Positions 29,040 through 38,980 of a stretch of DNA of 64,000 bases are shown here, in pieces. The notes under the pieces are model-generated. The model made no database searches and was not told where the DNA came from. It worked only from the letters and a program-made list of their open reading frames with translations. The stretch covers positions 62,001-126,000 of the IMG/VR virus record IMGVR_UViG_3300032268_000986, one strand, 5' to 3'. A program made the translations under genes and the position numbers. Positions within the stretch are counted from its first letter, which is position 1. Each line of letters begins with the position of its first letter.

Positions 29040-29115
29040 TGGTCTCACTGCCAGGACTTGAACCTGGATCTACTGCTTAGGAGGCAGTGGTTCTATCCAG
29101 TTGAACTACAGCGAG
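29040..29115 (-). tRNA. tRNA-Arg(CCT)
   Basis: Cloverleaf, ACTGC-CTCCTAA-GCAGT, encoded CCA. Confidence 0.92.
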
Positions 29116-29742
29116 TCAGCGCCAAAACGTACACACTTGACCATTGTGCTCGGCACGGATATTTGTGACATGGTCGTAGATCTTGTCAAAAATTGTAGAG
29201 TATGTTTTGGTTGTAAAATGTGGAGCCACTGATGTAAACACTATACCATGTGGGCTGTGTTGGGCAAGGGCCAACATGAGATGATTTTGCATGGCCTTGC
29301 CACCGGCATAGCCAGCTGCCCAGGTGCTGTAGTCTCTTTGGTGTTCCCATGACATACCCGAGGTCATGAATACAACACTGCTGCCTGGCTTCAAGTATTG
29401 CATTGCACACAGTGAGACGGCATGTGGTATTCCGGCATGTATTCTCACAGTGTCTTGCCAGGCATGTTCTTGATAATGCTGTGTGCCGTCAAAACATCCA
29501 GGTTGGTCAGGCCAGCTGGCGGCAGTGGTATTGTACAGCACCAGATCCAAGGGTATGGCAGCGGCCACGGACTGAAATTTATCAACCACATCTTGGGTAT
29601 TGCCAAAATTGGCAGTTATGCTGTGGGGATGATCACAGTGTGATATAGTGTGAACTGTGTGCCCTTGATTTCTGGCACGGCTGCAAAAATCAGGACCAAA
29701 TTTACCGGTTGGTCCACCTCCCCCAAAAACGCAAATGTTCAT
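29116..29742 (-). CDS. Short-chain dehydrogenase-like protein
   Basis: ICVFGGG..GKFG, YAGGK (YxxxK). Confidence 0.7.
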   Translation of the reverse strand: MNICVFGGGGPTGKFGPDFCSRARNQGHTVHTISHCDHPHSITANFGNTQDVVDKFQSVAAAIPLDLVLYNTTAASWPDQPGCFDGTQHYQEHAWQDTVRIHAGIPHAVSLCAMQYLKPGSSVVFMTSGMSWEHQRDYSTWAAGYAGGKAMQNHLMLALAQHSPHGIVFTSVAPHFTTKTYSTIFDKIYDHVTNIRAEHNGQVCTFWR

Positions 29743-29747
29743 GACTG

Positions 29748-29900
29748 TTAGCTGGGAATAAGTCTGGGAAGGTAAGGAACTGCACGTGGTCCGTAGCGGG
29801 ATTGCAGTAAGAGACGAGCCTCTTGGGCTGTTTGAGCACCCACACGGTCTTTGAATTCTTTGCCATCGGGTGTGCGTATAGTGGCTTCAAAAAGTTTCAT
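29748..29900 (-). CDS. 50-aa hypothetical protein (not in ORF track)
   Basis: MKLFEATIRTPDGKEFKDRVGA...; TAAATA 5 nt before ATG. Confidence 0.6.
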   Translation of the reverse strand: MKLFEATIRTPDGKEFKDRVGAQTAQEARLLLQSRYGPRAVPYLPRLIPS

Positions 29901-29913
29901 ACCACTATTTATA

Positions 29914-29988
29914 TGGCCGGCCCTGCAGGAATCGAACCCACACCGCTTGGTTCGAAGCCAAGCATTCTATCCATTGAACTAAGGGCCG
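29914..29988 (-). tRNA. tRNA-Arg(TCG)
   Basis: CTTGG-CTTCGAA-CCAAG, CCA end. Confidence 0.92.
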
Positions 29989-30005
29989 TGTTTGATAAGT
30001 AATTT

Positions 30006-30707
30006 ATGCAAACAATTTTATATATTCTCATTGTAACACACATTACCATTGCATGTGTTACGCTATTTTTACATCGAAGTCAAGCACACCGAGGAGTTGA
30101 GTTTCATCCTGTGGTGAGTCATTTCATGCGATTCTGGCTATGGCTAACGACTGGCATGGTCACTCGCCAATGGGTTGCCGTACACCGCAAGCATCATAGA
30201 TTTACCGAACAGGATGGTGATCCGCACAGTCCACATGTGCATGGTTTTTGGCGTGTGCTGTTCACAGGTGCAGGTCTGTACCACTTGGCCAGCAAGGACT
30301 CGGCCATGGTCACACAATACGGCGCAGGAACACCCGATGACTGGGTAGAGCGCAACATATACTCCAAACACAGCAAACTAGGTATCTTGCTCATGTTGCT
30401 GATAGACATGGTATTGTTTGGTTGGTGGGGGTTGGTGGTATGGGGCATACAAATGATATGGATCCCATTCTGGGCAGCAGGAGTTATCAATGGAATTGGA
30501 CACTGGACCGGATACCGTAATGGTATTACTAAAGATCATAGTCGTAATATTAGTCCACTGGGCATTGTTATTGGTGGCGAAGAACTACACAACAATCACC
30601 ACTTGGATCCAGCAAATCCTCGTCTCAGTCGTCGCTGGTTTGAATTTGATATAGGCTGGGCGTACATACGCCTGTTGAGTGTGCTGAGACTGGCACACAC
30701 GAGATAA
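30006..30707 (+). CDS. Delta-9 fatty acid desaturase
   Basis: His boxes HRSQAH, HRKHH, GEELHNNHH; TM segments. Confidence 0.93.
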   Translation: MQTILYILIVTHITIACVTLFLHRSQAHRGVEFHPVVSHFMRFWLWLTTGMVTRQWVAVHRKHHRFTEQDGDPHSPHVHGFWRVLFTGAGLYHLASKDSAMVTQYGAGTPDDWVERNIYSKHSKLGILLMLLIDMVLFGWWGLVVWGIQMIWIPFWAAGVINGIGHWTGYRNGITKDHSRNISPLGIVIGGEELHNNHHLDPANPRLSRRWFEFDIGWAYIRLLSVLRLAHTR

Positions 30708-30708
30708 C

Positions 30709-30784
30709 TGGTGCTGATAACCAGAATCGAACTGGTGACCTCATCCTTACCAAGGATGCGCTCTACCGACTGAGCCATATCAGC
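30709..30784 (-). tRNA. tRNA-Thr(GGT)
   Basis: CATCC-TTGGTAA-GGATG. Confidence 0.95.
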
Positions 30785-30838
30785 ATGAAAGAAAAACCCT
30801 TGCCATGACCTCATTGAGCATCACGCAAGGGCCATGTC

Positions 30839-30912
30839 TGGAGCGGGATAGGAGAATCGAACTCCTAACTAAACCTTGGCAAGGTTTCGTTTGACCATTA
30901 AACTAATCCCGC
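30839..30912 (-). tRNA. tRNA-Gly(GCC)
   Basis: AAACC-TTGCCAA-GGTTT. Confidence 0.93.
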
Positions 30913-30929
30913 GATAACTTTATAATAAA

Positions 30930-31132
30930 AAGTGTCCGGCTACTCACACCACATGAGCCCCGGACTGAGCGGTTACTCTGTCCACTACATTTATTCTTTT
31001 GGAATGGCGTTAGTACCACACCCTAGGCAGTTTTCAGGATCTCCGAAAGGGAGACTGTAAGGTCAGGTCCTAGTGTACCCCCTGGTCTATCGTTACAGGG
31101 ACGCTATTTCGTTAACGTAGAAATAGTAAGAC
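30930..31132 (-). ncRNA. Candidate structured ncRNA
   Basis: ORF-free; hairpins CTATTTC/GAAATAG, CCCTG/CAGGG, CTAGG/CCTAG, TCTCC/GGAGA, GTCCGG/CCGGAC. Confidence 0.45.
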
Positions 31133-31138
31133 GGGATA

Positions 31139-37705: not shown

Positions 37706-37856
37706 TTTTATAGTCAAGCACCGAGAATGCCAATTTAGGAGTCCGGTGCTTCCGTTCCAAAGCCGATGCAGTTATGTCAGGATCCGTTCCCGGCCGGTTG
37801 GACCCGAATAGTGTATGCGTCCATACACGATACCTTATCGATGCTTGACTATAAAA
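37706..37856 (-). ncRNA. Candidate stem-closed ncRNA (~150 nt)
   Basis: Perfect 15-bp terminal stem TTTTATAGTCAAGCA. Confidence 0.5.
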
Positions 37857-37860
37857 ACAA

Positions 37861-38062
37861 AAATGCTCTGCATCCCCCGGCGGTAATTGTAGTGCATCAT
37901 CTCTTGGATTTCTCCGCAATTCTCACACACCTTCCACCCGCTTCCCGACAGGGACCGTTATCGCATTGCCAGCGGCCTTTCGGTAAGAAGACTACCACCC
38001 TTGGCTATCACACCACTTCTCATCTTGCGGGTCACAATATCTGCTGATTAGGCAGAACGTTT
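37861..38062 (-). ncRNA. Candidate structured ncRNA (~200 nt)
   Basis: Terminal stem; long-range ACCCGC/GCGGGT pairing; GNRA-like loops. Confidence 0.55.
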
Positions 38063-38148
38063 TGGTGGAGACGGATGGATTCGAACCACCGCGCTTTTTA
38101 GGGGCCAGATTTACAGTCTGGTGCAATCAACCACTCTGCCACATCTCC
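38063..38148 (-). tRNA. tRNA-Tyr(GTA)
   Basis: CCAGA-CTGTAAA-TCTGG, variable arm. Confidence 0.94.
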
Positions 38149-38221
38149 AAAAAAGGTAGGATCACGGTTGCAGGACCTAGTGCTCTTGCGAGGAAGTATC
38201 CAGGCGATGTGATCCTAAAAA

Positions 38222-38297
38222 TGGTACACGATACGGGAATCGAACCCGTCTTACCAACGTGAAAGGCTGGTGTCCTAAACCGATAGACGAATCGTGC
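38222..38297 (-). tRNA. tRNA-Glu(TTC)
   Basis: CCAGC-CTTTCAC-GTTGG. Confidence 0.93.
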
Positions 38298-38300
38298 ATG

Positions 38301-38532
38301 CTATATGCAACCACATTAGGGAAGTTCTTGACACGCATCACCAACTTGCATCAAGACCTCATTACGGGCCTAGTAGTTCCGCCGCCTTCCTGGAGTTTGG
38401 TGTAGCCCTATCCCTCACGCTCGATGGTGTCTCGCGCTACTCTTAGGCCCTCCTGCTTCATGGGTATCCGGCTCGAATCAGCCTTTTGTTCACCCCTAAC
38501 GGACTAGGTAACCCTAATGTGTTTGCATATAG
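38301..38532 (-). ncRNA. Candidate stem-closed ncRNA (~230 nt)
   Basis: 20/21-bp terminal inverted repeat. Confidence 0.55.
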
Positions 38533-38572
38533 TAGCTGGGCAAACCCAGCACCATATGAAAATAACTGTAAC

Positions 38573-38584
38573 TTGTTAAAGAAC
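38573..38584 (-). promoter_or_regulatory. rrn-type boxA (Nus antitermination) site
   Basis: GTTCTTTAACAA, one mismatch to GCTCTTTAACAA, just downstream of TTGACC-N17-TATACT (38626-54). Confidence 0.65.
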
Positions 38585-38762
38585 TCTGGAACTAGTTGTG
38601 ATCAACTATTTCCTAACTAGCCACTAGTATAACATCATCTGCCATACCGGTCAACTTGTTTTGTAAAAGCCCCGCCTTGTTGCAGGGTCTTTACAAACTC
38701 AGCTGTCTTTCCCGACTTGTTTCTATTGTAACACTCTACTCAATTTTGGTCTAGCACTAAAA

Positions 38763-38790
38763 GAAAAACCCGCATCATGTGCGGGTCTTT
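38763..38790 (-). terminator. Intrinsic terminator (putative attenuator)
   Basis: ACCCGCA-CATGA-TGCGGGT then TTTTCTTTT. Confidence 0.8.
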
Positions 38791-38817
38791 GGTTGTTAGT
38801 ACTTTCTACTTAGGGTG

Positions 38818-38916
38818 TTACACCCGCTGTAACACCTGTACCGTTGACGATGGCTCGCAATCGCTCTCATAGGCTATTGCTGTCCAATAATTCAAGGTGA
38901 TTAGTTGTGTCATCAT
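38818..38916 (-). CDS. 32-aa putative leader peptide MMTQLITLNYWTAIAYESDCEPSSTVQVLQRV
   Basis: ATG about 7 nt after TAGACA-N17-TATAAT (38923-51); terminator follows. Confidence 0.62.
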   Translation of the reverse strand: MMTQLITLNYWTAIAYESDCEPSSTVQVLQRV

Positions 38917-38980
38917 AGTGTTATTATATATGCCTGTGCAATAAATGTCTATACTTTTCTGGGTCTTTTTGTCCATTTTG

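Follow-up and report, generated by a model that had tools for sequence, protein, structure and literature searches.

Putative ribosome-dependent attenuators with near-pangram leader peptides precede the tRNA arrays of an uncultured jumbo phage

The uncultured jumbo-phage contig IMGVR_UViG_3300032268_000986 (342,865 bp) carries, within the stretch of 64,000 nucleotides (nt) that we analysed and refer to as the window, a large set of tRNA genes arranged in two blocks, each of which is headed by a small unit consisting of a promoter, a short open reading frame (ORF) and an intrinsic terminator. ARAGORN detected 31 tRNAs between 29040 and 38297, all on the minus strand, and a relaxed run added tRNA-Ser(tga) at 34001-34089 on the same strand, a gene that Rfam scores as selenocysteine (Sec)-like (48 bits against a threshold of 47) and that relatives carry as Ser(tga) at the same place, bringing the region to 32. 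Two further tRNAs (47085-47238) and a permuted transfer-messenger RNA (tmRNA) lie outside the region, giving 35 tRNA-like genes in the window that together cover all 20 amino acids. A preliminary description of this DNA had arrived at the same total and the same coverage; it had also placed 33 tRNA or tRNA-like genes on one strand in this region, and the single strand stands, but ARAGORN and Rfam recovered 32 of these genes and not the 33rd. Its division of the array into a block for Glu, Tyr, Asp, Cys and fMet and a block for the remaining amino acids agrees with the positions we find (38297-37127 and 35855-29040, respectively), as does its statement that each block is headed by a sigma70 promoter, a short ORF starting with ATGATG and a terminator. 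The two units and the blocks behind them comprise the following features:

38923-38951, minus strand: leader 1 promoter, TAGACA-17-TATAAT, 11/12
38818-38916, minus strand: leader 1 short ORF, 32 amino acids, leaderless, ATGATG at 38916
38764-38790, minus strand: leader 1 intrinsic terminator
37127-38297, minus strand: tRNA block 1 (Glu, Tyr, Asp, Cys and an initiator-like Met)
36891-36919, minus strand: leader 2 promoter, TTGACA-17-TACAAT, 11/12, conserved in relatives
36749-36883, minus strand: leader 2 short ORF, 44 amino acids, leaderless, ATGATG at 36883
36688-36717, minus strand: leader 2 intrinsic terminator, with a stem of 8-9 bp, a conserved 9-nt loop and a T run
29040-35855, minus strand: tRNA block 2 (27 tRNAs for 16 amino acids, with five protein genes interspersed)

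The ATGATG start lies 6 nt past the -10 element in leader 1 and 7 nt past it in leader 2. When both strands of the 64 kb were scanned for a promoter followed by an ORF of 20-70 codons and a terminator, leaders 1 and 2 were the only sites returned. The leader 2 terminator also reads as a terminator on the plus strand.

The composition of the leader 2 peptide follows the division of the tRNAs between the blocks. Its first 34 codons (36883-36782, minus strand), which we propose as the sensing zone, encode exactly the 16 amino acids of block 2 and contain no Cys, Asp, Glu or Tyr; over the whole ORF, Glu and Asp occur in the tail only, and Cys and Tyr are absent. Judged against windows of phage proteins, full coverage is expected by chance in 1.3% of cases, and coverage combined with exclusion of the other four amino acids in approximately 2e-5, a figure qualified by the zone boundary of 34 codons having been set after the fact. 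Leader 1 holds Glu, Tyr, Asp, Cys and Met and contains a cluster, Y-E-S-D-C-E, with a chance expectation of 0.4%; because it also carries 11 further amino acids, it includes the block 1 set without being exclusive to it. The proposal of the preliminary description that leader codons partition the amino acids in the same way as the blocks is therefore exact for codons 1-34 of leader 2 (16/16), but leader 1 takes in its own set plus 11 others.

The same layout recurs widely. Our comparison set comprised more than 200 IMG/VR loci (designated L003, L004 and so on), from which 89 units of the leader 2 type were extracted; no near or distant DNA match to the window was found among the GenBank phages (50,697 records). 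In most relatives the order is an initiator-like tRNA-Met, a promoter, a short ORF, a terminator, a conserved spacer of 130-300 nt and a tRNA array on the same strand. The 89 units share a sigma70-like promoter and an ORF of 27-63 codons, kept open in every one of them, whose stop codon is followed after 18-36 nt (median 24) by a terminator. All of these terminators belong to one family, with hairpins of -11 to -20 kcal/mol followed by a T run; the exact terminator sequence of leader 2 is found in 20 IMG/VR stretches. Because the ATG lies only 6-10 nt past the -10 element, 47 of 85 units are leaderless, and the remaining units mostly have a leader of at least 40 nt, in several cases with a Shine-Dalgarno-like run of purines, AAGGAAAC for example, immediately ahead of the ATG. 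An ATGATG start is common (23 units) without being universal. The leader peptides match no Pfam or PHROG family, and some motifs (WSRGF, NSIPG, DRTPE) are conserved among them. Leader 1 has orthologues in 28 distinct versions, all leaderless, of 28-36 amino acids, with the stop codon 20-25 nt before the terminator. Among bacterial genomes, the terminator pattern appears on only four contigs of metagenome-assembled genomes (L216-L219, from Haliscomenobacter, Flavobacteriales and Polynucleobacter bins), one of them 183 kb long, which are probably jumbo-phage contigs that were mis-binned.

Across these relatives, the amino-acid content of the leaders is unusual and depends on where the tRNAs lie. 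All 20 amino acids are present in 38 of 87 unique leader peptides, and in the majority of members in 20 of 52 clusters formed at approximately 50% identity, against 1-2% of length-matched protein windows from the same phages. This content is specific to the reading frame: the real frame has it in 45% of cases, the other two frames in 2% and 0%, and shuffled nucleotides in 2.3%; in 29 units all 20 amino acids have already appeared upstream of the antiterminator strand described below. Where a tRNA lies downstream on the same strand, its amino acid is found in the leader in 826 of 836 cases (98.8%), compared with 43 of 74 where the tRNA lies in an upstream block only. Leader content thus covaries with downstream tRNA content in related phages, the relation that the preliminary description had put forward for examination, although the corresponding Fisher p of 1e-28 is not a true probability, since related sequences are counted and the data are not independent. 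There are at least seven different split arrangements, and in each the leader lacks only amino acids served by the upstream block, for example:

Window: upstream block E, Y, D, C; missing from the leader, C and Y
L010: upstream block E, E, D, P, L; missing from the leader, D and E
L024 group: upstream block D, E, Y, C; missing from the leader, C and E
L030: upstream block D, E, N, Y, C, H, V; missing from the leader, C, E, H and Y
L049: upstream block E, Y, D, D, C; missing from the leader, C and D

Cysteine illustrates the rule within the peptide family to which the leader of the window belongs: a Cys codon is present where tRNA-Cys lies downstream (L005, L007, L008, L010, L011, L014 and L146) and absent where it lies upstream (the window, L024, L026, L030, L033, L043, L047 and L049), with L097 as the one exception. 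The C-terminal cluster in each version of leader 1 likewise mirrors the tRNAs behind it, reading Y-E-x-D-C ahead of Glu, Tyr, Asp and Cys tRNAs, H-D-Y-R-E ahead of Glu, Tyr, Asp, Arg and His tRNAs, and E-A-L-D-Y-D ahead of Glu and Asp tRNAs. The main rule is one of coverage: each amino acid with a tRNA downstream is represented in the leader, in many cases together with the rest of the 20, and exclusion is mostly limited to amino acids served by a separate upstream block. A comparison by eye of leader codons with phage anticodons was not discriminating, because the tRNA set is nearly complete.

The leaders also contain a predicted RNA switch. Four elements of it can be placed in the window:

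36763-36779, minus strand: leader 2 antiterminator, 5' strand, within the last 10 codons
36709-36725, minus strand: leader 2 antiterminator, 3' strand, formed by the 5' arm of the terminator and 8 nt of flank; pairing at -18.7 kcal/mol, z -3.2
38819-38828, minus strand: candidate 5' strand of the leader 1 antiterminator, which overlaps the stop codon and pairs with the 5' arm of the terminator; weak in this genome
36782-36883, minus strand: leader 2 proposed sensing zone, lying ahead of the antiterminator strand

In 85 of 88 units of the leader 2 type, a strand near the end of the ORF pairs with the 5' arm of the terminator and its flank better than in dinucleotide shuffles, at -17 to -23 kcal/mol compared with -13 to -17 kcal/mol for the terminator and with a mean z of -3.7; in a control of 120 other terminators from the same loci, z was -0.2 and 14% were significant. 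Relative to the end of the stop codon, the upstream strand stops 10 nt short at the median (10th-90th percentile: from 16 nt short to 3 nt beyond), a position that a ribosome completing the ORF would cover. The flanks vary widely among phages and change together, such that cognate pairs are 5 kcal/mol better than non-cognate pairs (0/5000 permutations). A single alignment of all 43 diverse units (MAFFT and RNAalifold) yielded no structure because the antiterminator sits in two registers; applied without guidance to the two register classes, RNAalifold predicted the helix in both. In class A3, 85% of cells pair and 29 cells show double changes against 9.9 expected (0/500), with far lower values for slid partners, and in class A2, 89.7% pair and the covariation score was reached by 1 of 500 shuffles. 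The core GGGTCC encodes Gly-Ser in the window and lies within Arg-Val-Arg in L003 and L004; since it is read in different frames among relatives, its conservation is at the level of the RNA.

Judged by these features, leader 2 of the window is an intact member of the family. At minimum energy its full RNA folds into the antiterminator. A hairpin further upstream, with a U-rich stretch behind it, could be a pause site but leaves segment 2 unsequestered, and a convincing segment 1 (the anti-antiterminator) did not emerge from the folds examined. Leader 1 of the window has an antiterminator match of 10 nt (-13.2 kcal/mol compared with -11.9 kcal/mol for its terminator; p 0.02) and, on its sequence, is a diverged member and a weak switch. 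Two further regularities are seen at the ends of the leaders: their C-terminal tails recur as EGWDG, EGWDD, GSGYA or GGGYA in the window (36749-36770, minus strand) and in relatives, and a small conserved hairpin within the antiterminator loop (GGTTAAC...GTTAAC or GGTTAC...GTAACC) contains the stop codon.

We propose that both units are ribosome-dependent transcription attenuators with a "pangram" leader, placed before phage tRNA arrays. Host RNA polymerase would start at the strong sigma70 promoter, and a ribosome would load on the short, mostly leaderless ORF. A ribosome that kept pace with the polymerase to the end of the ORF would occupy the last codons, which contain the 5' strand of the antiterminator; with this strand occupied, the terminator hairpin 18-36 nt further on would form and transcription would stop. 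If instead the ribosome were delayed at any earlier codon, the antiterminator strand would be free to pair with the 5' arm of the terminator and its flank, and the polymerase would continue into the spacer and the tRNA genes. Fresh phage tRNAs would then restore translation of the leader and close the switch, forming a negative feedback. Because a near-pangram leader holds at least one codon for each amino acid served downstream, a shortage of any one charged tRNA would be sensed. The default state, as modelled by folding, appears to be read-through, in that the ribosome-free RNA folds into the antiterminator, unlike that of trp, and because no segment sequesters the antiterminator strand of leader 2, an absence of translation should also give read-through. 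We infer that stalling causes read-through, that the logic is default-on, and that the switch is linked to depletion or cleavage of host tRNAs; that cleavage or decay of host tRNAs is the natural trigger is speculation on our part. We estimate the probability that the family works in this way at roughly 0.78, and our confidence is somewhat lower for leader 1 of this genome. Content that tracks tRNA location, an ORF open in every relative and a covarying antiterminator are the sequence features by which ribosome-mediated attenuation is defined, and they give support to the idea, first raised in the preliminary description, that ribosome stalling governs these tRNA genes by attenuation.

The regions between the terminators and the tRNAs contain elements that bear on this proposal:

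38725-38753, minus strand: promoter P2, past the leader 1 terminator (bypass), kept in relatives
38626-38654, minus strand: promoter P3, TTGACC-17-TATACT with TG (bypass), kept in relatives
38573-38584, minus strand: boxA-like dodecamer GTTCTTTAACAA, with a hairpin before it; the sole exact match in the window
38298-38572, minus strand: conserved untranslated region of approximately 270 nt between the boxA-like site and tRNA-Glu, with the motif ATTAGGGTTACCnAGnCCGTTAGG common to relatives
36483-36685, minus strand: conserved structured spacer of approximately 200 nt, lying between the attenuator and the tRNAs, absent from the preliminary description
35870-36484, plus strand: convergent gene for a protein of 204 amino acids between the spacer and tRNA-Trp, absent from the preliminary description
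35497-35525, minus strand: internal promoter of perfect consensus, past the Trp, Ala, Gln and Ile tRNAs
34532-34560, minus strand: internal promoter of perfect consensus

The spacer past leader 2 contains a hairpin with an AACGAG loop and a covarying stem, then CACTNTAAAC, CAAAYGGGCGG and three more covarying hairpins; the element occurs in more than 100 IMG/VR contigs and one of its motifs in more than 119 stretches. Rfam returned no match for the spacer (36483-36685) or for the region at 38298-38572, and readings of the spacer as an RNase P RNA or a T-box were rejected, the likeness being superficial. Insertion of one or two convergent genes after the spacer is seen in the window and in L003, whereas most relatives have tRNAs there. 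The 204-amino-acid protein of the window has its match in L003 (38% identity). This locus also retains the promoter and the start ATGATGAACAC, its terminator is identical, and its leader peptide is very different. In type B relatives, a gene of approximately 60-70 codons, starting approximately 20 nt past the terminator, lies before the spacer; its product (for example, in L031, L040 and L046) shares ...TEHTLTPEQ...KLERA and matches phrog_20536 (function not assigned). This gene lacks its own promoter and would need read-through to be expressed. On the side of leader 1, the conserved start sequence of P3 is present in 88 IMG/VR stretches, and variants of the boxA-like site occupy the same position in relatives; from its sequence, we infer that the site may be an antitermination signal of the rrn type. 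The succession of tandem P2 and P3, a hairpin and a boxA-like site is the layout of the antitermination leaders of rRNA operons, here standing before phage tRNAs.

Several observations weigh against our proposal or limit its reach in this genome. The preliminary description had cautioned that internal promoters (38725-54, 38626-54, 35497-525, 34532-60) could bypass the terminators; all four are found, and the caveat is real. Leader 1 is followed by the conserved P2, P3 and boxA-like site, and because P2 and P3 follow its terminator, block 1 can be made without leader 1, which in this genome would add to these two promoters. The minimum-energy fold of leader 1 in the window is moreover the terminator together with a local hairpin that sequesters the antiterminator strand, and a significant antiterminator is found in only 71% of its relatives. 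For block 2, most of the tRNAs can be transcribed from the perfect promoters at 35525 and 34560 whatever leader 2 does; the leader 2 promoter is the sole recognised promoter for the Trp, Ala, Gln and Ile tRNAs, and its terminator lies 0.83 kb from tRNA-Trp, a distance that includes the convergent gene, so that read-through from leader 2 has to cross 0.83 kb antisense to a gene. The sequence TTGACA-18-TACACT, which might act as a bypass promoter, opens the spacer in approximately half of type B relatives. To these points must be added the counting of related sequences in our statistics, the persistence of 17-18 amino acids in the leaders of small-array phages, by which leader content is a superset of the array and not its strict mirror, and the fact that in classical attenuators single codons are usually weak sensors.

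The last two of these points would also suit an attenuator that is real but senses the overall state of translation or its coupling to transcription, as set by host shut-off, ribosome availability or the timing of infection, with the composition of the leader being incidental. Such a device would be turned on whenever translation was lost, since without a ribosome the leader folds into the antiterminator. We nevertheless consider a purely general sensor unlikely, as it does not account for all-20 content that is 20-40 times commoner than expected and specific to the reading frame, for the selective absence of amino acids served by a separate upstream block, or for the way in which leader 1 relatives concentrate exactly the amino acids of the tRNAs that follow (YExDC, and HDYRE where Arg and His follow). 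The promoters past leader 1 and inside block 2, together with the promoter-like spacer start of type B, lend themselves to a more prosaic account, in which the short ORFs simply encode small proteins, their terminators are nothing out of the ordinary and the arrays use their own promoters (P2, P3, internal, at the spacer start or specific to a phage), and the conserved peptide motifs WSRGF, NSIPG and DRTPE could be taken in its favour. These motifs, however, coincide with conserved RNA segments while frames differ among relatives, the peptides match no known Pfam or PHROG family, other terminators lack the antiterminator signal, and amino-acid content follows tRNA location; in addition, 24 of 25 type A relatives have no promoter scoring at least 10/12 from the terminator to the first tRNA. 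Taken together, this evidence makes the small-protein account very improbable.

A small non-coding RNA, composed of the promoter, approximately 150-200 nt and the terminator, with frames open by chance, was our own first reading, drawn from L003, which keeps the 5' end, a middle block and the terminator while its peptide differs. It was ruled out when all 89 of 89 units proved to have retained an open frame, 27-63 codons in length, that stops 18-36 nt ahead of the terminator, when versions with long leaders were seen to have a purine-rich stretch before the ATG, and when all-20 content was found to be confined to that one frame, and we leave it next to no probability. Ribosome-dependent attenuation of the tRNA arrays remains the reading that we prefer.

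The surroundings of the arrays are those of a phage, with genes that are phage-like or auxiliary, including an HNH endonuclease, an ATPase, an exonuclease and an RNase H-like protein. Further features in and around the tRNA region are:

28128-28688: peroxiredoxin (AhpC/TSA), auxiliary gene
30006-30707: fatty-acid desaturase, auxiliary gene inside block 2 on the opposite strand
40054-41355: TctA-family transporter subunit, auxiliary gene
37127-37202, minus strand: initiator-like tRNA-Met, atypical, with the acceptor end CGCGGGG...CCCGCAACCA and an unusual D arm and anticodon stem
43048-43538, minus strand: tmRNA, permuted (two-piece), tag ANDSQFALAA

The initiator-like tRNA-Met is detected by ARAGORN and missed by the Rfam tRNA model, and in many relatives such a gene lies directly upstream of the promoter of a leaderless leader 2. 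GOLLD RNA (RF02032) occurs within the tRNA arrays of relatives, at L011:9451-9914, just upstream of a leader 2 unit, and at L081:10468-10931; none was found in the window at 27000-49000. Because the tmRNAs of relatives fit the betaproteobacterial model, sequence comparison suggests that the hosts are betaproteobacterial and from freshwater.

The purpose of phage tRNAs is debated, with proposals that include matching of codon usage, compensation for decay of host tRNAs and escape from tRNA-cleaving defences. We entertain, at about even odds, a broader hypothesis in which a clade of freshwater jumbo phages uses one leaderless pangram peptide to monitor the whole decoding system and open the phage tRNA set when any host tRNA becomes limiting, for example through anticodon-nuclease cleavage or phage-induced decay, with split sets using two leaders and the spacer acting as a new RNA for processivity or tRNA processing. 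A leader peptide that gates tRNA genes by sampling every amino acid would mean that a phage measures decoding capacity and supplies tRNAs on demand, and would carry leader-peptide attenuation, so far a matter of one to three amino acids and of enzyme genes, over to RNA genes and to all 20 amino acids. Arrays that are split, and thereby divide the amino acids between two leaders, constitute a clean natural experiment, and the element could serve as a compact reporter for shortage of any tRNA or amino acid.

Among known systems, the antitermination of rrn operons (boxB-boxA-boxC with Nus factors) resembles the region between P3 and block 1 in its exact boxA-like dodecamer and hairpin, and the spacer past leader 2 in that a hairpin is followed by CACTNTAAAC, the resemblance of the latter to boxA being only loose. 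Unlike the sensing step that we propose, such antitermination would, judging by the sequence, form a second, constitutive layer. T-box riboswitches also couple the state of tRNAs to a choice between terminator and antiterminator, but they bind uncharged tRNA directly and need no ORF, whereas the signal here depends on the reading frame; the T-box covariance model gave no match at E <= 5 in 35800-39050. No Rfam family fits the leaders: Trp_leader and Thr_leader reached 20.9 and 20.6 bits against thresholds of 41 and 55 (E 0.6-1.1) and did so over the terminators only.

Closer in logic are the leader attenuators that respond to translation stress, among them PA5471.1 upstream of armZ in Pseudomonas aeruginosa and bmrB-bmrCD and vmlR in Bacillus subtilis. 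A further leader-peptide attenuator of this kind is yxjB (PMC6851288). In these systems, as in our proposal, a ribosome that stalls in a short leader ORF lifts the block imposed by a terminator, and genes that help translation through the stress are induced. They differ in responding to ribosome-targeting antibiotics and in what they control, namely pumps, ABC-F factors or methylases; sampling of all amino acids is not a feature of their leaders, and none of them is known to control tRNA genes.

The nearest counterparts in architecture are the amino-acid biosynthetic attenuators of enterobacteria (trpL, hisL, thrL, ilvL, leuL and pheL), which likewise have a promoter-proximal short ORF closely followed by an intrinsic terminator, one strand of which is also part of an antiterminator helix. 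In these attenuators, as proposed for the phage units, the choice of helix depends on where along the ORF the ribosome stands, and sensing of more than one amino acid is already known from ilvL and thrL. Biosynthetic attenuators regulate enzymes, whereas the phage units would regulate tRNAs, and where biosynthetic leaders contain a run of one kind of codon, the phage leaders spread over as many as 20 amino acids, each represented by one codon or a few. Many of the phage leaders are, in addition, leaderless mRNAs, unlike those of biosynthetic attenuators, and whereas the absence of translation leads to super-attenuation in the trp type, read-through would be expected of leader 2, in which no segment 1 was found. 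Full-text searches of the literature gave no account of leader-peptide control of tRNA genes or of leaders that contain all amino acids, nor a description of phage tRNA arrays regulated by the state of translation. What appears to be new here is the application of the leader-peptide attenuation design to phage tRNA genes, recurring in approximately 90 related uncultured phages.

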